A stretch of DNA of 61,735 nucleotides, counting the filler, from Choristocarpus tenellus KU-1152 (Eukaryota; Protista; Phaeophyceae), in NCBI GenBank assembly GCA_964200185.2. It is 7 parts of 7 records of this genome, joined end to end, with 100 filler letters (N's around TTAATTAATTAA, not from the genome) between each part and the next. Parts side by side here need not be neighbours in the genome. Positions count along the whole stretch, not along the records: positions 13,462 to 29,312 come from CAXNAD020000919.1; 6 more parts are not named here. One strand, 5' to 3'. The translations under genes and the position numbers were made by a program. This document shows positions 13,337 to 29,312 of this stretch, piece by piece. How positions within the stretch are numbered: position 1 is the stretch's first letter; every line of letters starts with the position of its first letter. The notes beneath the pieces are model-generated. The model saw only the letters and a program-made list of their open reading frames with translations, was not told the DNA's origin and searched no databases.

Positions 13337-13484
13337 GAGTCAAAGTATCTGGGGGGTGGGGNNNNNNNNNNNNNNNNNNNNNNNNNNNNNNNNNNNNNNN
13401 NNNNNTTAATTAATTAANNNNNNNNNNNNNNNNNNNNNNNNNNNNNNNNNNNNNNNNNNNNCCCCCTCCCAGTTACTTTGGGTC
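13337..13484. mobile_element. MITE family B termini on both sides of a linker
   Basis: GAGTCAAAGTATCTGGGGGGTGGGG on the left, CCCCCTCCCAGTTACTTTGGGTC on the right; flanks differ (TAT vs AAA), so possibly two copies. Confidence 0.75.
13362..13461. other. Artificial contig linker
   Basis: 44N-TTAATTAATTAA-44N. Confidence 0.98.
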
Positions 13485-14685
13485 AAAGCAGACTTCGGTA
13501 GTAAGAGGCAATAGATGAGGTTCACTTGTGTGGGATGAATGAAGCAGTGAATGGAATAGAAGAACTGTGATACTAGGATATGAGAGGAGGCTGTTGCTAG
13601 TAAAGACGGTGGATAATGAAGGGTGAGGTTTATGTTGACCTTTTTCGTATTATAGAATGAACACCAGTGTTGCAGTAGTCTTTTTTTATTGATTTGCCTT
13701 TCATCAGTTTTTTTCACATCTACATGTGCACACATGAACTTGCTCCTACCCAGTTGACTTATTTTCTTCTGTGATGGATGTACCTTCTTCCAGGCAAGAG
13801 CTACTGCATTTCTTCAGTATGTGTTCTGTCCCCTGCCTGCACTCTAGATATACTGTGGTCGTAAAATATTGGTTGCCCCAGAGTAATCCTATCTGAGAAT
13901 TACATAGCTGCATTATACGGGTCTCCAGAGATAGGCGAAAACAGGTCTTCTTATATGCCACAAGAAAGGCCTCTGCTCAATTATGGGACAAAGTTTATTT
14001 TTCAGTCTCTCTTCCACAGTGGTGCAGTCGTTTGTGGAGCTTCTGTTGTGTGCATAAAATTTGAAAATAGTTTGCAGTTCACTGGGGTTAAAAAAAGATG
14101 TACAAATGAAAAACAACGAAAATTTGTGTATCTCTCAGTTATAGTGGTATGACTCCCTTGATATGTAGGGTAGAGGTTGCTTGTTGTGAGATTTGATTAT
14201 ACAGGCAGTGTTAGCCAAAGAATGACCGACTATAGTAATAATATAGGTGTTGCATACAAGTAAGTTGGTGATGACAAGTTGTTGGCATTGTTGCCAGAAC
14301 TGCTGGTGGAACTCTTCTAGCAAAGTACAAACATGTTCTGCTTAAATAGAAGGAACTATAAAATGGAAATGGATAGCGCTTTGTGGTGATGATCTTCCCG
14401 TGAATGTTCTGATTCAAATTGTCATCAATGTATAGTACAGTGGTGTGGATGAGATTAAAGCTGTGAGGGAGCCAAAATGTTTGAACTTGTCCTTTTGAAT
14501 TTTATTGCTAATTTTTCTGTTTTGGGTATGACTAGGTATTTGTTTTATGGAACACACAACATAGGATCGAATGCCATTGTAATGCAAGTCCAGCTGTGCT
14601 CTGATGACTGATCTCTCTTGTTGTCCTCACTGATTACTGCATCTCTCTTGTTGTGCTGAAATACAACTCTTGTTATTTTGAACAG

Positions 14686-17600
14686 CTTCAAAGCCAGCCT
14701 CGTGGCAATGACAAGATGAACAAGATTTCTGACACCATCAAGGAAGGGGCCAAGGCCTTCCTCATTACTGAGTACAAATGTGCGTGTCAAAGAGAGACAA
14801 TTAGAAGCCCCTCCTACAGAATATTGAAAATGTATCCCCCGCCCTCACCCCAATTTACCTCCCTTTGCCACAAAGGTACAAGATGTTTTTTACCTTTTTT
14901 CTGTTCCACTTCACTTATTTCACCCAAATTTTGCAGGGCTTTTCACCTGGCCAGGCAGCTGTGAAAGGTTCGGTCTCTTCCATAACCAGGTTGCATACAC
15001 TTGTAAAAGGTTCTGTGTCGGCCCAGAAGCACTTCTATGGTTTGGTGTATAAATACAGCCGTGTTTAACTCAGAGGGACAATTTTCTAGGGTTCGGTCCA
15101 TAACTTGATCCTTGTGTTTATGAAAGGTTCTGTGTCAGACCAGAAGTATTTCCAGGGTCCAGTCTATACTATCCATGTTTGACTTCAGGCTAGCCTGTTT
15201 GTGATGGACATGTTTGGTTGTAAGGGATGGTCTGGGCATGCATTGTCTAGACAATGAAAACCGTTGAAATCTGTTGACTCCTTGTGTTCTTACTATTGTG
15301 TTCTTACTATTACTCATTAATGTAATCCAGAGTACGTGTTGAAAGAAACATCCACCTTACAGTTTGACCCACAGTACTCAGGACAGAGGTAGGGTTGGAC
15401 CTCTGTGTTTTGACAAGACTGACCCAGTGTAAACTGTTCCGAATAGGTCTGGTCTGCACCAAGGCTAGTGATGTTTGGCAGACATTTTTCTTGTGTGTTG
15501 CCCTGATTCACTCTTTCATGAATATCACAGTGTTTATGAAAGGTCCAGTCCTGGGCAGACATCTATTTCTACAGGCCAAGTCTGATGAGAAGCCCTGAAA
15601 GTTTGTCAATGTGATACATACTCTCACCCCTGTGCCATTTTATGACTCAATCCTCTCGGTAGGTTTTTGATAGCATGACAGTGACAAGTGGAATGTCCTC
15701 ATGGTACTACAGCATTTTGCTCTAATGATTGTGCCTCCATCTCTCCTGACTTGAATCCGCATGTTGGTATGTTATTGTTGGTTTTTCAACTTCATAAAAT
15801 CTTCCTCCATGGAAGCAACGATATCATAACGGTCTGCAGGTGTTAGTTTTGTATACTGATGGGGTTAACATTGTAGTGTTTGGCATTTTCATGCCCATCT
15901 TTTTACACCCAACCTAAATCGTGTTGCAAATGGGGGCCAATACTCGTCTTTGTTCCTCAGGAGCAAGCTTGTGAAAGCAAACAACTTGATGGGTTGGAAA
16001 GTAGAACATGAAAATCTTGAAAGAGAGTAATTTTACCTTTTCTACGTTAGATGGGAGATACATAATATTTCTATAGGTCCCTTGATGGAAAGATCAATGA
16101 ACTAATTGGTATGTTGATTTGCTTTGAGCTGCTTTTTGGACAAGGGAGCTGACTCAGAAGTGACTTCAGGAATAATGTTCTTTCCCTGGTTCGACTATTT
16201 CATTCCCATTCTTTGTTGTTTGACCCCTGTCCTGATTATCACCTGCCCAATCTGTGCCTCTCTTCGTTGCCATGTACCCGACACGGTGCAGATCTGGCAA
16301 TATTTGTCACTATCTTCTTTGCCATCCTTGTCATCATATACACATTGGTAAGCCCACACCCCCTCACAGCCCCAGTGCTTCACACAGAAAGTATTAGTTG
16401 GGCTTACACCTCCCTGACTGTTTCATGCCATCGGTTGTTGTCATGACATTCTGAGACTTGAGTCCTGTAACCCCAACCATACAGTTAATGCCAAGGAGTT
16501 GATTTTTTTACCAGGTAGACCCACCGGTTCTTGCCGCAGACTGCTTCATAATCCTTACTGCTTTCAGCCTCTTTGCTTACACATTGATGACTATGATCAA
16601 TATTTTTCTATGATCAATATTTTTCACAATTCACACACATTTTGGTTGAATCAACCTGTTCACGGGATCTAAACTAGCACCTCATGTTTGTTATAGTATA
16701 CATTTTTGTCGAATTTTATTGATACACATATTTGCCACACCTAGAACCTTGTTCATTTTTTTCTCGTGCAGTTGTGTTTGAAGCTTTGGATGAACCTGGT
16801 GTGTGAACAGGCTTATCACATAAAACACTCCCTTGAACCTGAAGACATCCTGGTCCCCTGCGAGTCTTACCACTCTTGATTTGAGCTTGTATTTCAGTAC
16901 AAAGTTCCTGCCCATAGTTTTAGCTTTGAATTTTGTTCTGTTTGTGAATGGATCAGAAACTGTGTTTGCTGTTGTACTTCATTGACGTCAGTTTGTATAA
17001 AGGCGGCATGGCAGAGATTCTACCCTGCTGTGTGCTGGGTGGGTCACTTTTGAACCACTAGGAGATGCACTACTGTTTCGTGCTCAAGTTATATTGATAT
17101 ATCATGGTTGGAGAGAGTACTATTTGACCTGTTCTCCAACACTTGATATAATATACTACCCCTTTCTTTTCTCCTGAAAAAGCACAATTCACCCACACAC
17201 ATGTACCAGTACTCAGCAGTCTTACTCCCTTCAAATAGTGTATGTAATTTGTTCAGTGGTGTACAGAGTCTCCATTCATTTTTTTTTATTTTGTGATCTG
17301 CCTTCTTCCCAGTAGGTGCTTTTTATCGCTGCGAAGATGTTTTGCTGAACTATATGCTTAGAGATGGTGATCCTCCATGCAACCATGTTGTGCTTCATAT
17401 TTGTACTTCATTGTGTACTTAGAATATAGGGCTAGCTTCAAGGGGTAGGAACTGTGTTAGGTTGTCAGACTTGAAGCATGAGAAGGGAAGTATGAGCTCA
17501 TAGCATTTTGTCAGACCTTCTGATAATGTCTTCAGATGATGCCTTCTAATGATGCTTCGTCCATGAAACTTTGACAGTACAATGGAAGGGAGGATCGCAC

Positions 17601-20600
17601 CGATGGTATTCGCATTGCCTCTTGCTTTTTTGCTGGTGCCATCCTATCAGCTGCTGCTGGTTGGGGAGGAAGTGAGATACCCTTGTTTTTTTGTCTGTGC
17701 TCTACACCCTTGGTCTGTGGTACTGTGATATGGTACACATACCCTTGACCATCTTGGTAGGCTGACAATATTTTGTACATTGGTTGTGCATCTCGCAGAT
17801 GTAGTGCTAAAAAGCAAGATTAAATGTCTGGTTTGTCCAAAGCTCCAAATCTTCTTTGGATACGTGCAATTTTTTAATCTTTTCTCTCCTGCCTGTCAGT
17901 GGATAGATAGGAGGGTAGTTCTAGTGTCAATATTGGATGGTCCAACAACAAGGATATGTGATTCTATATAATAGTATGCTTTGCCTTTTTTACTAACAAT
18001 ATGACGCATGTATGCCTTGAAAGCATGAATTATAGGCTCTGGACATGATATATCCCTCAGTTTTGTTTCCAGTAATGTAGTAGTAATCATGCTGAGATAT
18101 CAAAGGCGTGCTGCTATAAGTGTATTAAAGAGTTGGAAAATATCCCTCCCTCCTTCAATAGTAGCCCCCCTACTCTTCTATTATAATGCTCCTTCTGTGA
18201 TGGCCTGTTGTCATTGAAATGTGATATGGAAAATAGTTGGGAATCATTGCCATATTTTTGAAAGTATATTTCGTTTGGGTTACCTGGCGCTTGGTGTTAA
18301 AAATATTGGAATTTGGACTGGTAATAACCATTCCCATTCATTTTCCTAAGCATGATATTATTACTATCAAAATCAACACTGGTTAAGATTGGTCATTATC
18401 ATGATGCACTTTTCACACTTTCAATCATTTGAAAATCGATTACCAAAATCCTACATCTACCAAAAATTCCCTGTAAAACCAAATCTTGTTTTAGTGTTGG
18501 TCAATATGCCCCTTTGGGAGAAAAATGCCAGTTATTGACATTCTTCTCAACTTTTTTGAAGTTGACGGACTGAACTTTGGAATATGAATGGTGACTAACA
18601 AGTCCTCTATTCTAGTTTAGACTCCTATGTGAGAAAGGTGGTAGACCTAGAAAACCCTATAGCATGAGCGATTTTGTCATCACAGATCACAGAGAGGACC
18701 TCATGTTCTGTGCAGGATTGCTATTAAAGTGGTAGTGGCGTAGTGGGCATTTATGTAGCATTTCCTGTGCATGTATGACAGCTGTATGGTGTTTCTGATT
18801 CTACAAGAAATTCTTTGTTGGTTTGCTATTCCGAAGTACATACATCTATTTTTTATTTTTGTTTTGTTTTGAAATTCTCCCTGCTTCTATGAAAAACTCT
18901 CCACAAGTCTGAAGGACAAGGTTGTCCATCTTCTCTTGCCACTGTAAATTGATGGTGATTAATCACTTCTTTAGTCTTGCATATTTTCATCCCCGCTACC
19001 CCTCACCTCTTGACCACTCCCACACTTTCCTGAGTTAGACATGTCAACCTTTGGTCCTAACCCTAACCTTCTGGTCAAAACATCCATCGCCAATAGAGAA
19101 AAGCTCCATGTTTTGATTTTGTTTTGCAGTGATGATTGCAACAGATGCTAATGTGCGAACAACAGCAGCTGCAGAAGCGTCTGGGTTAGACCAGGCTCTA
19201 AGGGTGGCCTTTACTGGTGGTGCTGTTATGGGTTACACAGTTGTTGGCCTTGCTCTTCTGGGTATCAGCGGGTAAGTGTGAGAACTGTGTTGGAGTAGGA
19301 TGGGGGTTAGAATGTAGAGGGGTAATCTGTAGCCCTTGACCATTGTTGTCACGGCATTGTATGCAAACATCTAGTACATCAGGTACTGCAGGTATACCTC
19401 AGGACTTTTCACCAGGCAGGGAAGTTAGCACGGTCGTTGGCCATGATGAAATGGTCAATGGTCATGGACCTGGTCATATTTGACTTTGGTCGTACATAGC
19501 CAGCCAGTGGCCCCAGTCATGTTGAGTAGTGACGGCCATACATATCTTGGTCATGTTATAATATTTATTCTATGGGTGAACAGGTAATATTTTTCTTGAC
19601 ATTCAGGTCAGCCATGTCATGGTCCTACCTCCCTATTTGCCATTCACTCTACTTGTGTCTTGTATCATCCTATGCCACTACTGTAAGTACAAAATAATGT
19701 TTGTTAATGTTTCTATAATATTTCCTATTTTTCCTTCTTAGAGACTACAATTTCAGAATTGAATGAAAATACTTGGTCCGGACATGTTGAGAGAATGTTT
19801 GACCCATCAGACCGGCGGACATGGACCAGTTCAACACCTAGTGGATATGGGCTGATTGTATTGAAAACCCCTCCCTCACTCCAACCCTCAGCCTCTATTT
19901 AACCATGTCTTGTTCTATGTTGATTCCCTATTTTCTAATCCTCTCTCTTAATATTGCTTTGTACTCCTTCTACGATGCCTTTTTTGTGGTTTCTATGTGT
20001 GCTTCTTTGTGTTTTTTTATGTGTGAAATTTATGGGCAGGTTTATGTGGTTGATGACAGCAGATCGTGATGACATTTCCTCCACAAATGAGAGTGAAGAT
20101 CTCCGCCTAGCTGTGGAATCCCTTTCAGGGTTTGGTTTTGGTGCGTCCTCTATTGCACTCTTTGCACGTGTTGCCGGTGGCATCTACACCAAGGTGAAGG
20201 ATCTCTATACCAATTTAACATCATTATTGCACCTTGATATATATTCAAGGAAGTGTGTGTTGATTGTTTGGTTGTTATCAAGGACACCTTACAGAAACAA
20301 CCTTCTTCTAACTGCCGAGTCAAACTTTCCCTGAACACAATTGTGTTTTGTTTGGGCTAGCACCAAAATTTATTCTCACTATCGGTGTTCTTGCAATCAA
20401 ACACAAAAAATATCCTCAGATTTCATTCAGGAGAGCTTTCTTCCTAAAAATAACCTCTGAATAGTCAGTCTCATACTTACCACCTTTTTGTCTCAACCCA
20501 TATTTGGTGACAACCAGCAATGAACAAGGTAAGAAGTTTGTGAGGTGCAGCCAATGACACTGCTTCATTTTTGGAAGAGGATGCAAGACTCTCTGGAAAA

Positions 20601-23600
20601 TGTTGATATTATGTTTTTTTTCTGCTCCTCATGTGGATCTAATTCGTTCATAATAAAACTTGATGCTGAGAATATTATTGAGGACATGAATCAAGAGCTC
20701 AATTTCTGCTTGCCATGATATACTCCTCCTTGGCGTGTGAAGGAAGGAGAGTCAACGGCAATGGCATTGGAGAAGTGGGGTACAAAAACCCCTTTTTTAT
20801 GTTGCATATGGAGCCGAGTATATTAAGGCCAAAAAAAGGCAAGATCCTACTGCTCCTTCTCAGCTCCCTGCTACTCTTATTACTCCAAGCAATTTGTTAT
20901 AACCATGCGTCTTTCCAGAATGTAGTAGTGATGGTGGTGTAGAGCGGTTAGGGTTGGCAAAGGATGGAGCAGGCAAATCATGTGGGAGGCGCTGGTGCAA
21001 CTGCACTCCCAAATATTGAGAGTTGGTATCTGTGACATGTATGCATAAGGCGTGAGATGGTCGAGCAGATGCACGATTCAGAGGAGACCTTAATGGCGAT
21101 GGGCTCTTGACCCTAAGCATTTCAGAGGGTATAACTGTGTCCGTTCAGATCATAAATCCAATGTTGAGATTTTGATGAATTTTGACTATCATGTTTGTTA
21201 GCAAGTGTCAATATCCTTGCTCCAGGTACACCTTTCATATTTGTATACATTTTAGGTAACTGTGATCACACAGAACACCGAAAAAGGGCATGAAAAACCT
21301 GTGGGAAGCTATGCCCCGAACGGACAAACAGTTCAAAACTCCTACCCTCTTAACTGCTTCGACTCTCTTAATAGAACTGGTTCAAGCCAACCCAATCTGT
21401 GGCATGTACGAACTAGTTAATTTGGAAATGTTATTTTGTGACTTACCATTTTTATGTTAAAGAGATTCATTTGTACAAGCACACATAAGAAGACTTGCAA
21501 GGATGAGAGTGGTTCTGGTATGTACAGACCCAAAGATGCACAGACAGATAAACAGACAGACAGACAGACGAATGGATGGATGGATGGATGGATGGATAGG
21601 AATAATTCTATTGTTTGTGAGACTTAGGTGTGGAGATCTATCCTCAATACTCAGCAACTTGAGGTGCATTTTTCAATTGATACACTATACCATGTGTGGC
21701 TTTGGGAATCTCTACAACGCCTTACTGCTTTGTAATCCTCTTAACCAAACCCGTAAATAACTTTACCTCAAACCTAGCCCTACCTTAACCTTGTCCCTCA
21801 CTCATGATCCCATTAATCTACCAACCATAATCAAACCTATTATTTTTATGTGGATATAAAAATTCCATAGGGAGGAAGCTACCCTGGTAGGTAAGGGAGA
21901 AGAGTTCTAGAACTCCACGACGCATGTATGGGATGTATTGGATGCGATAATAAATTTTATGTAACATCATGACTGGTGTGTAAGGCCAACCTGGATCCCC
22001 TCCAACCCCCTAGCTTCTCTATGACTGGTGGTAACTGTGTTGAATACCCAGGTCGTGAAAAGTGTGTACACTATATTGTATTGACATTTATGCAACATAT
22101 CCAGATTAGGTGCCATATTTCAGCAGCGGTTCTGAACAATTCCCTGTGAGATCCACCATCAGACCCTTTCAATATACAATAATTTATTGGGTACTACGTT
22201 AGATCCTGTCACAAATGAAGCGATTAAGTGCAGTGCATGGTAAACTTTCATTGCTGCACATAACGTTTCTGTGGATATGGACAGAAGTAGTGAGAGATTC
22301 TTCTGAGGTCACATTGCTCATGCACTCAACCATCTAAGTGAGGTCCTGGCCCAGTAGAGTGTGTCTGAGGTTGGTAGTGAGGGAGAACATGTAGTTATTG
22401 CCATCTCATCTGTTGCTCCCATGCTACACTGCCAGCACTCCCCTACAGTGTGTGTGCAGTGGAACATAAATTGAGCTACTTTATACTGCTGGGAGGGCAT
22501 AGGGTGATATTTAGTTAAATTGTTTGCATAAATAAAAACTGCACTTCAACAAGTAATATAGAGATCTTATGTACCAGGATTACATTGAGGTATTTGTGTA
22601 CCGCAGGTATTATGAGAATATACTGAGAGCATTGCTGATACCTACAAACATTTGTCATGGCTTGAAGCACTCAGTTATCCTCATCATATTTCTACCTGTA
22701 GCAAGAGTCCTAAAGCAGAGCAGTGTCCCCTCACCTCTAGGAATTATAAGAATTGGCTCGGAATCCAGGGAAGTGGGTAGGGTCAGTTGGTACTTGACGA
22801 GGAAGCTTTGATGGTGACAAGGATTCTGTTGCTACCACCCCTGACTGTTCCGAATTGCTGCAGGCAGCTGATGTGGGTGCAGACCTTGTGGGCAAGGTGG
22901 AGGAAGACTTGCCTGAAGATGATCCCCGTAACCCTGCTGTGATTGCTGATAATGTGGGGGATAATGTGGGAGATGTAGCAGGTGAGCTCTGCAGGAAGTA
23001 TGTTGGTTAGAGGCACAGGAGTGAGTGAGAAAAAGTGGGAAATGATATTTCATCGTTCACTATTTACCAGGACAGCACTGACCTGAGTTAGGTTATGTAG
23101 ATTGCTCTGTTCAGTAAGAGTTTGTTATTGTACATCATTGGTTTTGATATTAACTTCGAGAATGATAGTGGCACTCTTGGTACCATGAATAAGATCTTAG
23201 TGGTCATGTTATGTTGTGCACTAAGCCAGAATTGCTACCTTAAACTGTATGGTGTTGTACCTACTACTGTAGATTCAATGAGATGTTTTATCATTCAAGT
23301 CTTTTGTGGAGTATCCTGTGACATTCTTAAATGTATGCATGAAAGAAGAATAGCATTGATCATCGCACCAAGCCACCTTGAAGCAAAGGACAAAAAAAGG
23401 TCATACGGTACCAAATTTTGCCTTTGCTTTCTACCACTGTAGTACAGCTTGGTAAATCTGTAGGAAAAAACTCAAAACATTGTAGTCATGAATTGTATAA
23501 TATAACCCACTTATATCACCACCTCATTCTCCCTCCACTCTGGATTCGCAAGGCATGGGTGCTGACCTTTTTGAATCTTATGTGGGGTCAATCATTGCTT

Positions 23601-26600
23601 CTGCAACCTTGGCCGATGGTAACCCTCGTCTCATTGCCCTCCCATTCTGGATTGCCGGCGCTGGAATGATTGCATCCTTTATCAGCTACTTCTTTGTGGG
23701 GACGAAGGTCTGCTACCACCCGTCCCCATCATCCTCCTGCTTAACTGTACCTGATATACTTCCGAGCATATAGATTTGCAACTGACTCTGTGCAGTCTAG
23801 TACTGGTCTTCCTGCTGCAGTGTAATGGCACCACTCTTTTGATGACTGGAGGATCATTGTGCTTGTGCATGGAAGTTGTCTTTTCCTGGGTTGTTGGCAA
23901 CTACTGCAGCAGCACAGAATCTTTCCACTTGCAGTTAACTTGACCGGAAAATAAGATTATTACCTTACAACCTTATGAGAACAAGACAAGTTCAAACTTA
24001 TGACTCTCCTCTCTCATCCCTTTTTTCTATGCCTGATGCTGAACCTAGGTCTTGAACCTAACCCTGACCCTCAGCCTAGCTTGTACTATGTTCCTAATCT
24101 GGTCTCTGATACATATCTGCAATGGTGCAACAGTAAAGGTCATAATGCTGATGAATCAACACTTCTGGAAAATATAGCCTTTGACACACACAATGATACC
24201 TACAAGTTCATTGCAATGAAATATTGCCAATACTCCCTTTTCCCTGATTTTACTTTTTCCCATCACTTCCACTGCTGTTCATTTCCCTGCTCTGGACCAT
24301 GCTTACCTCTTTGTCCTTATTCTATAGCTACCCTTTCCCACCGCTTCCTCTGCTCTGTGCTTAACCACTGTTCCCCTATGCCTTTGTTCCTCCTCCATCA
24401 CCCCCTCACCCCCACATCATACCTACTGTCACTGGGATGAATAGGAGGGTGCATCCCAGCGACAGTTGATGCAGGCACTTCACAAGGGTACCATAACTGC
24501 CAGTGTTCTTGTTGTAGCCTTTGCTGCAGTCATCATCTCGCTCTTCTTTGATGGGGATGACGAAAATGAGGGATGGAAGATCTTTGCCTGTGTGGTTATT
24601 GGACTTGTCTCAGGCATCATTATTGGGGAGTTCACTGAGGTGATGAGAGTTGTTTATTTATCTCTACTAGGTATATGTGAGGGGTGATGTGCTGCTCATG
24701 TGTGACTTATATTCACCATTACATGTGTGAGATTTGTGGAATAGAGATAGATTGCGTACCCTATGATATTATCTTGACTCCTCTGCATTTCACAAGCGGA
24801 TGTATTACATATTGAAGAGTTCAAATATGCAGCATTGTTGTAGGGGAGAACATTTATTCAAGGTCAGTTCTCATGATGGATACGTTGAGTTAATGATAAC
24901 TTGTTGGCATGTTCCAGCATCTGCCTTGTGTGCTACTCTATGCACTCAATAATCCTTCCTCCTCCTGCCTAGCTAATAATCCCCACATACTATACCAAAT
25001 CATCGTCTTCCACATTTACCCACTGCATTATATGCCCCTCCTGCACCATCCTGTAACAGGTCTTCACATCGTATTCATTTGGTCCTGTAAAGTCCATCAC
25101 TGCTGCAGGAGTTACAGGGCCGGCCACAGTAGTTATCCAGGGACTGGGAATTGGTATGATCTCTTGTGTCCCGGTGAGTGGGGTAAGAGTTTGCATTACT
25201 GTACTCTAGCGGAAATGGTGATGGGCATGCAGTTGGGAAGCAAGGATAGACATTGATTCTGTACAAATACATACATACACAGTTTAAGGTATATGTTATA
25301 CTACAGTGCCCTTGCATGGTACATAGATGAAAAGAGGTAGAAGTGGGTACTTTGCAGGGATATATGGTTATAGTGGAGGCAGGGCACGCACAACCCACTT
25401 CTGCTACTGTGTGCTATGGATTTCTTCAGGGCAGGCCATTGTGCTTTGAACTATTACTATTCTAGGTGGCTTTAGTGAGGAGATGAAGGTTGATAGCAGG
25501 GAGATAAATGTTTTCTCGAGCTTTCTGACTCAGTATTAATGACATGAATATGATGTGGAGGGGGGAAGGAAGGACTGCAAAGAGTGTGGTGATCTAGTGA
25601 TACAATGCTAGTTAGTGTGGGAAGGTGTGTAGCAGGAGGTTGGGTGTCATGCACACTTGACTTCACAGTTTCACACAACTCTATTTGCATATCCATGGAT
25701 TTTTTTCGAGATGTGAAAACTTTTATGTTTCAAAGGACATTTTCCCAAGCAAAGAACTTGCTAAAGCCTGTTCTTTCCTCCTTTTCTTCCCTTCCCTTGC
25801 CTGTAATCCTCTAGCATTCACCTTCATCTCTGTGAGCATTTCACCTCTTTCTTGTTCAAATTTATCTTTGGTGCACTTGTGCGGTGTTGCAGATCATTAC
25901 AACACTTGTGATTGTGATTATTGCATGTGATGCCCTCTCTGGAGACTATGGCATTGCTATTGCTGCCGTGGGCATGCTCTCCACCCTGGTATGTTCTTCA
26001 AGTACTCCTTGATTGGTTGCAAGACTTCGCCTCTCTGATGCGTTCATGATGCGACTCCTGTACTTCTTTTTTTTCTATTTTATAGTGAACAGGTATTGCA
26101 AATTGCAGTGCGATTTTCCTTGTCATGACTGATATCAAGAGGCAGAATGTAAAAAGAGAAACATTGTAAGAGTTTTTGCCAAAAATATAGGCAATGCTCA
26201 CTCTTTCCTCACGTATTGTGTGTTCTTGAGGAGGTCATGATATACTGACCTAAGACTAGATTAAGCTGTGATGTCATGTGTCATACACACCTCAAGATAG
26301 ACTTGAAGGCTTGATGTATGCGTCAACTGTAAATGGTATTGTTAAAGCTGTGGAGCGTCATCCCATGTCATCATGATCACTCCCCAATCCCAGTCCAAAA
26401 TCCCTTTTTTTATATATATTCAATTCGTCTCAGGGAATTTGCTTGGCCACTGATGCATATGGTCCTATTGCAGACAATGCAGGAGGTATTGCAGAGATGG
26501 CAGACATGGAACAACGTGTGCGGGACACAACTGACGCCCTTGATGCACTGGGAAACACAACTGCAGCGACTGGTGTGTTTATTCTCAAGTGCCCAGCAAT

Positions 26601-29296
26601 AAATTGATATTTAAGGGTGGAGGATGGGGGTATGGGCAGTGAGATAGGGGTGGGGGCCTAATTCTTACTCTTACCCTAACCCTGGAACAGAATTATGGAA
26701 TTGGTCAGGGTTCATAGAGAACTAAGCTATGGAGCCAGGTGTTTCGATCTGGAAAAGTAGTGGGTGAAGTTATTTGATTATCTTCGTGCAGTAGTCCCCC
26801 AGGGCACCCTTATTCTTTTCCCCATAAGAAATCTTTGTGCAACATATATATATACTGTAGAACTCTCTGTTACTCCACTTGGAAGTATTAAGTGTGGTGT
26901 GTGTAAGCTGGATTTCCGTTTACACATTCACCTAAATGGTCTGTTGTCAGTCCCTTGGTCCTTACTGCACCCTAGACTGTTGGGATTCCACATCTGCCAG
27001 TTTATGATAATGGGCCTCTCAGCTATTGCATGCAATGCCAATGGGAAGCTTGCACAGGTTTTATTATTGGAACTGCACACTTGCCACAACTCCCCTTTGA
27101 CCTCCCTCACATATCACCTCTCCCATCCCCACCTTCATATTACATATTACAGTGTAACTCCTTCCACCCTCTCTAGATTCCATGAAGTTGATGCCACTTA
27201 TTTTGTTTTTGTGCACCTCCCTCTTCCAGGCAAGGGTTTTGCCATTGGGTCTGCAGTGCTGACTGCCCTCTCTTTGCTGACCGCCTTCACAGACGAGGCT
27301 GAGGTGAGCAATGTAATGTGTTTGGACTGTCTTGGTTGTGGTGTTCACGAATTTGTTGTTTTTGTTGTGGTTCTTTATTTTTGCTTGTAATATTTTGTTG
27401 TAGGTTATTGAATTATTTAAGTTATGCTTCAAAGTACTCTACTGTAACTGATGTTGGTATGTGTTGAGGTTTCTTGTCTTTTATCAGATGTTTTTCCACT
27501 GCTGATTGGAACCCTTTCTCTTGTGGAAGCATTAGCAAAGTGTGTTCATTTTATTTTTTGTGACGATGATAGCACCAAGAACATCTTAATACTTTTCACA
27601 CTGTTTGATGACAATAGTGGAAGGCTGTCTAATTGTGAAGATAATATATAAACATATTGATAGATGCACCAGTGTTGTTCTGTTGTGATATTTGTTTGTA
27701 ATGTCCTTGAATTTGATAAAATTTGACTGTGTGAAACCATCTAAGAGGGGGGTTGATTTTAGCCCTTTTGTTTCAAGCCCTTGTTGGATCTTGTGTAATA
27801 CAGATCATACTCACATGAACCGCAAGCTGAGCCTCCTTAAGAGAGTGCTACTGAAGAAGAAGATTAGCTGCGAATACATTGTTGGGTGAAAGTGGCCTCC
27901 ACAATGCTCAAAACACATGTACCATAAGGCAGTCATAGGGGACCCTTAAAAGCCAGCAACACATCCCTCTTACATGGTATCACTCACACTGAAATGCATT
28001 TTCTGCTTACTCTGGAGTGCATGGCTTTTGTCACTGACCATGCATTTAGTGCATCTTTGTAGTATATTCCAATTATAGCAATCAGAGTAGTATACTTGTT
28101 TTGTTATTGTTTGAATATGCTTGTGGCATGTTCACACAAGAGATTAATATATTAGGGTTAGGGTGAATATCTTAAGGACCCTGCATCAATACTAGTTGTA
28201 GCGCATACTAGTAGCACCAATATTTGTTTGTGTGAGGAAATTGTAACTTCAGAGAAGGTTCTCTTGTCTAAGGTCTAACTCTAACAGTTTTGCCTTCCCT
28301 AACTTTGCTGCGGTGCTCTTCCTTTACTAATCACAGGTCACAGATGTCAATGTGTCTGACCCCATTGTGCTAGGTGGTGTGGTCTTTGGGGCCATGCTTC
28401 CTATGCTCTTTGCTGCGTGAGTGTGGATACAAGTAGAAAAGATTGCTTGGATATAAGCTGCTTTGGAAAAACTCAAGCATCTGGGTTGGAGGAAAGGGTT
28501 TGACAAATGTGTTGATGTATATGCCTTGTTTAAAATATTGTTTTGTGCATCCTCTTGATTTGGTTTTACGAGATCTAAAACAAATGAAGCATTGAAGTAC
28601 ATCCCAACTGAACGAAATCATCATCCCTAAGAAAAATGAACAAATCAATGTCTTCTCGCAATTTATTAGTACGTATGCTGAGTTCAAAAGTTCAATTAAG
28701 TATTTGAATGAACTTTCCTCATATTTTGAAAAGAGGGAATAGGACCACCATTGCCTTGTCAATACTTTTTCAGTCTGGATGATGTATGTCCTCTCTAGTG
28801 GTACAGTGATATATCTCTTTTGACTGAGCCGCCACTCTGCACTGTTTTGAGTTTACACCTCATCCACATACAACCCCAAAAACAATTTGCAGCACCCTTG
28901 TTATTCTAACTAGACAAAGTATCTTAGAGGGTAGAGCTGTGTCTGTTTGGGACCAAAATCCAATGTTGCGATTTTGATGAAATTTTGGCTGTTGTGTTTG
29001 TTTGGAAGTGTCCATATCCTTGTTCCGAACACACCTTTTCATAACTTACACATTTTACCTACTCTGAAACATTTCAGAGTAGGAAAACATTATAAGAAAT
29101 CTGTGGGAAGCCAAGCCCCAAATGGACAAACAGGAAAAAATTCTTACCCTCTAAGATTTTTTCACTCTAACTCAACCTCCCACTTCGTCCCTTCTTTCCC
29201 AACCTATGCTACATTCTGTCCTAAAAACATCAATGGTCTTCTGATCATGTTCTATGCTCCTTTTTCTGCTGGCATGGTGCGAACCAGCCTTACCAT
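14686..29296 (+). CDS. Membrane-integral cation-translocating pyrophosphatase (H_PPase family), K+-dependent type; first and last exons missing
   Basis: Fourteen phase-consistent GT-AG exons: 14686-14779, 16292-16347, 17578-17671, 19130-19271, 20040-20193, 22864-22981, 23553-23707, 24445-24639, 25060-25173, 25893-25988, 26434-26572, 27230-27303, 28337-28416, 29288-29296. Hallmarks [71 protein letters not shown]. Confidence 0.97.
21109..21365 (-). mobile_element. MITE family A, diverged copy in PPase intron
   Basis: Degenerate TIRs GACCCTAAGCATTTCAGAGGGTA / TACCCTCTTAACTGCTTCGACTC; interior matches the other copies, closest to 51981-52238; TCTT on both flanks. Confidence 0.8.
21541..21598 (+). 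repeat. Compound microsatellite (CAGA)n(GATG)n
   Basis: cagacagataaacagacagacagacagacg aatggatggatggatggatggatggata. Confidence 0.9.
28911..29167 (-). mobile_element. MITE family A copy in PPase intron
   Basis: TAGACAAAGTATCTTAGAGGGTA...TACCCTCTAAGATTTTTTCACTC; TAAC on both flanks. Confidence 0.88.
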
Positions 29297-29312
29297 GTGA
29301 GATTGGGGGGGG

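Follow-up and report, generated by a model that had tools for sequence, protein, structure and literature searches.

The window analysed here is a stretch of 61,735 nucleotides of DNA from Choristocarpus tenellus KU-1152, in which seven parts of this genome are joined. A membrane pyrophosphatase (mPPase) gene (Pfam PF03030) lies on its plus strand, from about position 14477 to the end of the part that comes from CAXNAD020000919.1 (29312). The Pfam model (H_PPase) matches the gene exon by exon (E = 2e-24 to 7e-07). The features are as follows (HMM is a model built from 74 prokaryotic mPPases; X3 is a public run, which supplied one spliced transcript contig).

14477..14578, + strand: tentative first coding exon, MFELVLLNFIANFSVLG..., an ATG-initiated ORF with donor GTAATG in phase 0; it would encode helix 1
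14686..14779, + strand: exon A, 31 residues (HMM E = 1.9e-09; tblastn to diatom orthologues), with acceptor CAG after a pyrimidine tract and donor GTGCGT
16292..16347, + strand: exon B, helix 2 (weak HMM match; tblastn to P0173, E = 0.017; frame and GT..AG borders fit)
17578..17671, + strand: exon C, helix 3, 31 residues (HMM; tblastn to P0129, E = 4e-08; GT..AG borders)
19130..19271, + strand: exon D, 48 residues (HMM E = 3.4e-16; GT..AG borders)
20040..20193, + strand: exon E, helix 5 with S5.43, R5.50 and K5.58 (HMM E = 8.5e-14; Pfam E = 2.6e-10)
22864..22981, + strand: exon F, loop 5-6 and active-site aspartates (Pfam E = 2.2e-24; aligns to PDB 4A01, 8B37 and 4AV3)
23553..23707, + strand: exon G, helix 6 with D6.50, E6.53, S6.54 and G6.57 (Pfam, HMM and structure alignment; X3-confirmed borders)
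24445..24639, + strand: exon H, helices 7-8, ...IIGEFTE (Pfam and HMM; X3-confirmed borders)
25060..25173, + strand: exon I, 38 residues (HMM E = 1.3e-09; X3-confirmed borders)
25893..25988, + strand: exon J, 32 residues (HMM E = 1e-06; X3-confirmed borders)
26434..26572, + strand: exon K, helices 11-12, ALGNTTAAT(G) with A12.46 (Pfam E = 2.9e-19; X3-confirmed borders)
27230..27303, + strand: exon L, (G12.49)K12.50 and then 23 residues (HMM; X3-confirmed borders)
28337..28416, + strand: exon M, 26 residues, start of helix 13 (HMM E = 1.9e-04; X3-confirmed acceptor)
28417..29312, + strand: 5′ portion of the next intron, in which no further exon was detected

The tentative first exon is uncertain, having neither RNA nor homology behind it. 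Exon M is the last exon within the part. A search with the last 200 residues of each of seven orthologues gave no significant match in 28417..29312, and HMM positions 528-690 gave no match either; helices 13-16, about the last third of the coding sequence, fall past its edge.

The X3 contig (2791 nt at depth 166, without a mismatch) runs through exons F to M, its junctions falling precisely on the predicted borders, and confirms seven introns and the donor after exon M; its loose end lies at the 3′ end of exon E. Past 28416 it reads (A)LTMLSVQKAA, which matches the orthologues and belongs to an exon outside the part. Sequencing depth over the introns is 2-6, against 166 for the spliced contig. 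All 13 introns within the part have GT..AG borders. Counting 12 introns between firm exons, one after exon M and one tentative 5′ intron, the figure of at least 13 spliceosomal introns in a resident nuclear gene, given in an initial sequence-only reading of the locus, holds. The locus is thus an expressed, spliced nuclear gene whose 3′ end is cut by the edge of the part. That it is instead a pseudogene, an assembly chimera or a contaminant is hardly credible: although the readable gene is limited to about its first two thirds and the first exon is tentative, the 13 exons contain no stops or frameshifts, all 126 near-invariant family columns (conserved at 97% or more) agree, the transcript is abundant, correctly spliced and runs into the next exon, collinear genomic contigs from a second run show zero differences, and a bacterial contaminant is excluded because the gene has spliceosomal introns. 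By these columns the readable gene is intact; among clade-conserved columns, 180 of 184 agree.

The catalytic motifs of the mPPase family, including GNTTxAxxKG, are present, and the protein is a member of this family. The helix 6 and helix 12 motifs on which the sequence-only reading relied were both found at the positions it had given. The helix 6 motif, (G) plus 16 residues...FFVGTK, is encoded in exon G, and the helix 12 motif, ALGNTTAAT|G|KGFAIGSA, in exons K and L, whose shared intron interrupts the Gly codon. The helix 5 motif GFGFGASS is also present, but in exon E, upstream of the range 22864-27303 that had been assigned to the gene, though still inside the part.

Residue numbers for VrPPase A537 and TmPPase A495 follow PMC5150537. 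In an ungapped structure alignment, the first Ala of TTAAT corresponds to VrPPase A537, and hence to A12.46; in TmPPase its counterpart is residue 504 of chain 4av3_A. The latter residue would be A495 only if the chain has 9 extra N-terminal residues. Exon F ends at VrPPase G290, which places the following D at D294 (6.50), E at 6.53 and S at 6.54, and a Gly occupies the position of VrPPase E301 (6.57). S5.43 is provided by GASS, counting back from K5.58 (VrPPase K250). The mapped set is therefore S5.43, D6.50, E6.53, S6.54, G6.57, A12.46, G12.49 and K12.50, and the five residues that had been read from the sequence (A12.46, D6.50, E6.53, S6.54 and G6.57) are borne out by alignment to solved structures.

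K+-dependent mPPases have Ala12.46, where K+-independent ones have Lys, and G or A rather than T at 12.49 (PMC5150537, PMC10897367). By A12.46 and G12.49 the Choristocarpus enzyme is predicted to be of the K+-dependent type, and the two residues rule out a K+-independent H+-PPase (K12.46, T12.49). An H+-PPase of the Flavobacterium johnsoniae type, with Glu at 5.43, is ruled out by Ser5.43. The gate has the pattern of Na+-PPases: E6.53 is accompanied by S6.54 and D6.50, while neither 5.43 nor 6.57 is a Glu. The Na+-PPase of Thermotoga maritima (TmPPase; PDB 4AV3, 5LZQ), the sole enzyme in which a Na+ site at the gate has been seen (D6.50, E6.53, S6.54 and D16.46; PMC5150537), has A12.46, G12.49, D6.50, E6.53 and S6.54 in common with the Choristocarpus protein, but D16.46 where the orthologues of the latter have N16.46.

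We placed the protein in a tree of 67 rows (IQ-TREE, LG+C20+F+G4 PMSF), in which proxies stand for experimentally characterised enzymes: one is a MAG of Methanosarcinales, the other a transcript from a land plant with a full-length score of 1518.5 bits against VrPPase. The Choristocarpus protein falls within a stramenopile clade, where the diatom enzymes come closest to it. This eukaryotic E6.53 clade, sampled from diatoms, bolidophytes, chrysophytes and Cantina, has support of 100/100; within it the protein groups with the diatoms (93/83) and branches outside those sampled. The diatom proteins of Cylindrotheca (P0140), Seminavis (P0149) and Nitzschia (P0173) are at most 73% identical to it and have every signature motif in common with it. 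All sampled clade members share GFGFGAS-, GMGADLFES[FY]VGS-, the helix 12 motif and GP[AS]LNILIKL; the last of these, which provides N16.46 and K16.50, was seen in all that reach helix 16 (orthologues only).

The sister group of the clade is Caldilineaceae (Chloroflexota; 93/98), and among prokaryotes its closest relatives are these together with other Chloroflexota (93/98, then 99/93). These mPPases (L006-L009, L011, L018, L034) share the helix 12 motif, and L006-L008 also share GFGFGASS; they differ in being bacterial, intronless, about 680 aa long and without the eukaryotic terminal extensions, and are uncharacterised. With proxies as its reference points, the tree places the Choristocarpus protein among prokaryotic E6.53/A12.46 enzymes.

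The plant-type E6.57 enzymes form a clade of their own (100/100) elsewhere in the tree, on a long stem, and a constraint that unites the two eukaryotic groups lowers the likelihood by 40.9 lnL units (p-AU 0.035, which is marginal; the group was also named after the tree was seen). The grouping with H+-PPases that would speak against a Na+ pump was thus not found for the plant type. The Vigna radiata enzyme (VrPPase, plant type I; PDB 4A01) resembles the Choristocarpus protein in being eukaryotic and K+-dependent by A12.46, in its catalytic motifs and in the database name of the orthologues, but has its gate Glu at 6.57, where the latter has Gly. The best NCBIfam model also differs: for the orthologues NF001960 outscores the V_PPase model TIGR01104 (868 bits to 789), and so it does for an archaeal control (L073; 923 against 845), while a plant control (L102) is reversed (808 against 1244). 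A plant-type K+-dependent H+-PPase is ruled out by Gly6.57, the separate clade and the preference of the orthologues for NF001960. Direct comparison of P0140 with the two solved enzymes is distant (498 bits on TmPPase, 572 on VrPPase) and uninformative on subfamily, an archaeal Na+-PPase-like control having the same bias. As had been anticipated for automatic annotation, the orthologues are labelled H+-exporting diphosphatase or vacuolar proton pump in NCBI and UniRef.

The clade keeps a gate of the bacterial Na+-PPase type, and its likeliest function, which these residues and the tree make on balance probable, would be PPi-driven Na+ transport, alone or with H+. In such an enzyme, a dimer would hydrolyse Mg2PPi on the cytoplasmic side, with K+ as activator. 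At marine Na+ levels, Na+ would be bound via D6.50, E6.53, S6.54 and N16.46 (the last seen only in orthologues), and would be expelled from the cytoplasm, either through the plasma membrane or into a compartment resembling a vacuole. H+ may be carried too, when Na+ is low or alongside Na+ in the manner of Na+,H+-PPases. The literature of Baykov et al. was counted for Na+ transport and against transport of H+ only. The initial proposal of a PPi-driven Na+ pump is accordingly upheld as regards its residue pattern and its placement away from the plant type. E6.53 and A12.46 are insufficient as proof of Na+ pumping, because Na+,H+-PPases (PMC10897367 Table 1) have the same pattern and some K+-dependent H+-PPases are also listed with E6.53, both by Li et al. 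2016 (PMC5150537) and in Table 1 of Holmes et al. 2019 (PMC6882861). Moreover, Strauss et al. 2024 (PMC10897367) state that across subclasses ion selectivity is not predictable from any residue pattern, and argue that it depends on the geometry of helix 5 and an S5.43-Glu contact, which are invisible in sequence.

These exceptions give substance to the main alternative, a K+-dependent pump of H+ only that retains E6.53 and serves as the proton pump of acidocalcisomes or vacuoles, as the database name has it. E6.53 would then contact S5.43, which is present, and be protonated, as proposed for PaPPase, an enzyme that has E6.53 and pumps H+ (PMC10897367). Every eukaryotic mPPase characterised so far is an H+ pump (PMC11486809, PMC9408878), and residue 16.46 of the orthologues is N, as in VrPPase and PaPPase (PMC10897367), and not D. 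Nevertheless, the separation of the clade from the E6.57 H+-PPases, together with its closest relatives being prokaryotic enzymes of the E6.53/A12.46 type, makes this alternative unlikely.

A dual Na+,H+ co-pump at physiological Na+ is a sub-case of Na+ transport, included in the likelihood given to it above, and is by itself distinctly improbable; the sequence-only reading had argued against it. The Na+,H+-PPases of Bacteroides vulgatus and Clostridium leptum have A12.46, G12.49 and E6.53, as the Choristocarpus protein does (PMC10897367 Table 1), and a second Na+,H+-PPase lineage is reported, at least in what PMC11210485 relays of Nordbo et al. 2016. In our trees, an FGMGAS-bearing lineage (L005, L043, L060) adjoins the group of Chloroflexota and eukaryotes. 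We presume this lineage to be the Na+,H+-PPase subfamily, the first lineage of which is recognised by the Met in the helix 5 FGMGAS motif. The Choristocarpus protein, however, lacks an FGMGAS-type helix 5, with F rather than M at position 5.40, as well as other residues of this lineage: none of the nine assessable lineage-specific positions is shared (there are 11 in total, two of them beyond the part).

With PPi-driven Na+ transport as the preferred reading, it is also quite possible, though tentative, judging from the residues and the tree, that stramenopiles, this intron-rich diatom relative among them, run a PPi-energised primary Na+ pump that came from a Chloroflexota-like bacterial donor and is separate from the plant-type H+-PPase. 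The novelty first ascribed to the locus was overstated, since every sampled member of a large stramenopile clade carries this signature, and putative Na+-PPase orthologues of diatoms and marine prasinophytes had already been described by Pérez-Castiñeira and Serrano in 2020 (PMC7438732) and in a 2021 editorial (PMC8034386); the warning that algal sequences of this kind might be on record was well placed. Those candidates are likewise nuclear mPPases of eukaryotes, and are described as grouping with the Na+-PPases of prokaryotes. The Choristocarpus gene comes from a different organism, is intron-rich (13 or more introns) and branches outside the sampled diatoms, and all are putative. It is a further member of a predicted type that is shared by diatoms and their relatives, an idea in print since 2020. 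Our literature search found no published assay for any eukaryotic member of the E6.53 clade, and in 2024 Na+/H+ co-transporters were still described as ‘found in many prokaryotes’ (PMC11593465).

What this locus contributes is sequence, expression and phylogeny, the function being predicted: it adds an example that is spliced, highly expressed and not one of the diatoms sampled, an intron map, and Caldilineaceae as the nearest prokaryotic relatives of the clade. If the prediction is true, no PPi-driven Na+ pump would have been established in eukaryotes before this one, Na+ homeostasis in marine algae would include a component that has so far carried the wrong label, and hundreds of ‘H(+)-exporting diphosphatase’ database entries would be misnamed. 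If the clade pumps Na+, marine stramenopiles would possess, in addition to P-type ATPases, another primary Na+ pump, one that runs on a biosynthetic waste product. This would have a bearing on salt tolerance, on how vacuoles or acidocalcisomes are energised, and on how the use of Na+ and of H+ in eukaryotic bioenergetics came about.

The piece at 13462-29312 is nearly all taken up by a single gene on the + strand, which encodes a membrane pyrophosphatase (mPPase, Pfam PF03030). Three-frame translation, tblastn with prokaryotic relatives and an HMM trained on 74 prokaryotic mPPases yielded 13 firm coding exons (A-M), extending from 14686 to 28416, and one tentative exon ahead of them:

14477-14578, + strand, tentative first exon

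Read codon by codon, the exon borders are GT..AG throughout and the phases are compatible; the introns are canonical (0.4-2.7 kb) and G+C is about 42%. With the tentative exon left out, the exons join into an open frame of 503 residues that contains no stop. Searches with the spliced model were made exon by exon, and the joined protein entered the alignment and trees only. In this exon-by-exon comparison, PF03030 matches exon F at E = 2e-24 and exon K at 3e-19. A hydrophobic in-frame stretch at 14608-14685, which the HMM took as helix 1, is actually the pyrimidine tract at an intron 3′ end.

HMM positions 528-690 (helices 13-16) find no match up to the end of the piece, and the last 200 residues of seven orthologues gave nothing significant against the sequence past 28416, so roughly the final third of the gene is beyond its end. 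An exact look-up of three window ORFs, seeking the missing 3′ end, returned no record. The orthologue-like open frame that runs on past 28416 is a chance likeness and not a pseudo-exon: searched alone it reaches E = 7 to 90, and at 28416 the transcript leaves it by splicing.

Three public sequencing runs from one study (X1-X3), none recorded as RNA, were aligned to 22800-28500. In run X3, a single 2791-nt contig (depth 166, no mismatch) skips 571, 737, 420, 719, 445, 657 and 1033 bases. Every skip is GT..AG and coincides exactly with the borders that the gene model gives for exons F to M. Before 22862 the contig has a loose end that is the end of exon E, and its loose end past 28416, with about 1.5 kb extending 3′ of exon M, translates to (A)LTMLSVQKAA, the continuation found in diatom orthologues. 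Intron pieces within X3 have a depth of only 2-6, and X2 contains collinear unspliced contigs at low depth, without differences. Run X3 is read as RNA, or at minimum as containing spliced mRNA, and the gene is therefore transcribed, correctly spliced and longer than the piece.

At 23555-23589, X1 and X2 contigs are 90-95% identical to the window over the conserved codons of helix 6 and then differ on both sides, reading ..IIGTMVLGAA downstream without an intron at 23552; these samples thus contain a second mPPase gene, either a paralogue or a gene of an associated microbe. At 27726-27940, in the intron between exons L and M, many X1, X2 and X3 contigs match at 90-95% and then diverge, which marks a dispersed repeat family; some copies have a 193-base skip from 27770 to 27964 bounded by TT..CA. 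Further repeats within the piece are as follows:

21115-21183 and 28917-28985, intronic repeat pair, 80% identical over 69 nt
21256-21417 and 28947-29300, ORF likeness flanking the same pair, ..APNGQT.KNSYPL..
15001-15051 and 15118-15168, 51-nt direct repeat in the intron after exon A, 76% identical, 117 nt apart

The intronic pair, a Pfam search of which gave no match, is probably a mobile-element remnant.

The residues by which mPPase classes are told apart could be placed by alignment with two solved enzymes, the Vigna radiata H+-PPase (VrPPase, PDB 4A01) and the Thermotoga maritima Na+-PPase (TmPPase, PDB 4AV3). Exon K can be aligned without gaps to VrPPase 497-538 and to TmPPase residues 464-505 (chain 4av3_A), which puts the first Ala of the helix-12 motif on VrPPase A537 and on chain residue 504 of TmPPase; we take the latter to be A495, which holds only if the chain has 9 extra N-terminal residues. 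Exon F likewise lines up without gaps on VrPPase 250-290 and the next exon continues from there, so that its D corresponds to VrPPase D294 (6.50), followed by E6.53, S6.54 and a Gly at the position of VrPPase E301 (6.57). R5.50 and S5.43 are placed by their distance from K5.58 (VrPPase K250). Since VrPPase A537 is A12.46 (PMC5150537), the window Ala is A12.46 as well, with G12.49 and K12.50 next after it. Every residue call of the sequence-only reading was correct in these alignments. The protein furthermore matches 126 of 126 family columns conserved at ≥97% and 180 of the 184 columns conserved inside its own clade, an agreement that argues for a working gene. At 25060, right at a splice junction, Val replaces the Tyr found in 96% of the clade (E-V-FTS vs E-Y-FTS); because the transcript contig confirms the junction, this is a real substitution.

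A search with exon G of a library of 1.84 billion proteins returned 116 matches, some of them full-length but many the size of single exons, and a word search from one full-length match (P0012) retrieved eukaryotic proteins in very large number. Those with a named source belong to diatoms (Cylindrotheca, Seminavis, Nitzschia, Minutocellus, Stephanopyxis and Licmophora), the bolidophyte Triparma, the chrysophyte Paraphysomonas and the anaerobic stramenopile Cantina. Save for a few divergent outliers, all of about 130 full-length proteins of this clade carry [GSA]F[GS]FGAS-, GMGADLFES[FY]VGS-, the shared helix-12 motif and GP[AS]LNILIKL, the last of which gives N16.46 and K16.50. The signature is thus the norm of the whole eukaryotic clade. 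Two full-length mPPase-like proteins, P0065 and P0097, have degenerate catalytic and gate motifs (GMMADSFDS / ARTFAGPGKG and GTGAEYFES / ASAVAATGRG, respectively) and may, judging from these motifs, be catalytically dead relatives. In NCBI and UniRef, clade proteins are named ‘H(+)-exporting diphosphatase’ or ‘vacuolar membrane proton pump’, which bears out the earlier expectation that annotation would label such proteins H+-PPases; some JGI entries read ‘K(+)-stimulated pyrophosphate-energized sodium pump’.

For phylogenetic comparison we assembled 80 prokaryotic loci having the helix-6 motif and 22 E6.57-type sequences, all full-length, found on contigs of metagenomes and metatranscriptomes (one aligns with VrPPase over its full length at 1518.5 bits), and added a few viral-contig sequences. 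Trees were built with FastTree (144 rows) and with IQ-TREE (LG+C20+F+G4 PMSF, 67 rows by 680 columns), and agree on the placements of the window protein and its neighbours. They are unrooted or midpoint-rooted, since a scan of viral contigs for K+-independent enzymes as an outgroup yielded E6.53 and E6.57 types only. In both trees the window protein falls within a eukaryotic E6.53 clade (100/100), as sister to the sampled diatoms (93/83), with Triparma next (97/93) and chrysophytes after; its best identity is 73% (P0129 and the Nitzschia protein P0173). Judged from this one gene, the tree, the introns and the G+C content suggest an intron-rich ochrophyte that is akin to the sampled diatoms yet stands apart from them. 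The eukaryotic clade has Caldilineaceae as its sister group (93/98) and falls within a set of Chloroflexota sequences (99/93). The Caldilineaceae loci L006-L009 have the helix-12 motif in common with the eukaryotic clade, and L006-L008 also have GFGFGASS. The tree suggests an old transfer between Chloroflexota-like bacteria and eukaryotes, no direction being implied by an unrooted tree. The plant-type E6.57 clade (100/100, stem length 1.09) is found elsewhere, beside sequences of a Methanosarcinales archaeon and of Gracilibacteria (98/95).

Forcing both eukaryotic groups together cost 40.9 log-likelihood units (p-AU 0.035), a marginal value for a group named after the tree was seen. In these trees, which are made up of experimentally uncharacterised sequences, the protein stands apart from the E6.57 H+-PPase clade. 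The contrast of NCBIfam scores with TIGR01104 agrees in direction with this separation; the model names are uninformative, since every NF0019xx model bears the name ‘sodium-translocating pyrophosphatase’, and only the score contrast was used. Bit scores against the solved structures are likewise uninformative as a subfamily test, TmPPase being simply divergent: VrPPase scores exceed TmPPase scores for a diatom orthologue and P0012, and also for the prokaryotic controls (Methanosarcinales and Caldilineaceae).

Two further placements were observed. P0219, from the EukProt transcriptome of the euglenid Ploeotia vitrea, groups tightly with Paraphysomonas mPPases and likely comes from prey or a contaminant. 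Giant-virus MAG contigs in IMG/VR (L195, L196, L197, L198 and L200) code for full-length mPPases (774-794 aa) that have their gate Glu at 6.57 (GMGADLFGSFAEAT, GNTTAAIGKG) and are sister to two eukaryote-like E6.57 metagenome sequences inside the E6.57 clade.

From the gate residues, a PPi-driven Na+ pump had been proposed. An H+-only pump would also fit E6.53, as K+-dependent H+-PPases with E5.43, E6.53 or E6.57 are listed by Li et al. 2016 (PMC5150537) and Holmes et al. 2019 (PMC6882861, Table 1). According to Strauss et al. 2024 (PMC10897367), selectivity is unpredictable from the residue pattern and is set by the geometry of helix 5 together with the contact between S5.43 and the Glu. A12.46 is a well-established mark of K+ dependence (PMC5150537, PMC10897367). 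As a mark of class, the position of the gate Glu is less decisive than A12.46. A Na+,H+-PPase, which falls within Na+ transport alone or together with H+, had been disfavoured because the protein has GFGFGASS rather than TFGMGAS, a motif that we take to mark such enzymes. The protein matches none of the nine assessable positions specific to the FGMGAS lineage among the fetched loci (L005, L043 and L060; 11 positions in total, two beyond the piece). A second lineage of Na+,H+-PPases was reported by Nordbo et al. 2016, as cited in PMC11210485. We therefore consider Na+ transport, alone or together with H+, slightly more likely than not, and an H+-only pump less likely. The probability of functions other than these is small.

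Putative eukaryotic Na+-PPases are already in print: Pérez-Castiñeira and Serrano 2020 (PMC7438732) stated that biochemical validation was in progress, and no published assay of a eukaryotic member turned up in the literature searched. The Baykov group (2024, PMC11593465) still placed Na+/H+ co-transporters in many prokaryotes. The Choristocarpus gene hence adds a new member to a putative type of eukaryotic Na+ pump that is predicted and already noted.
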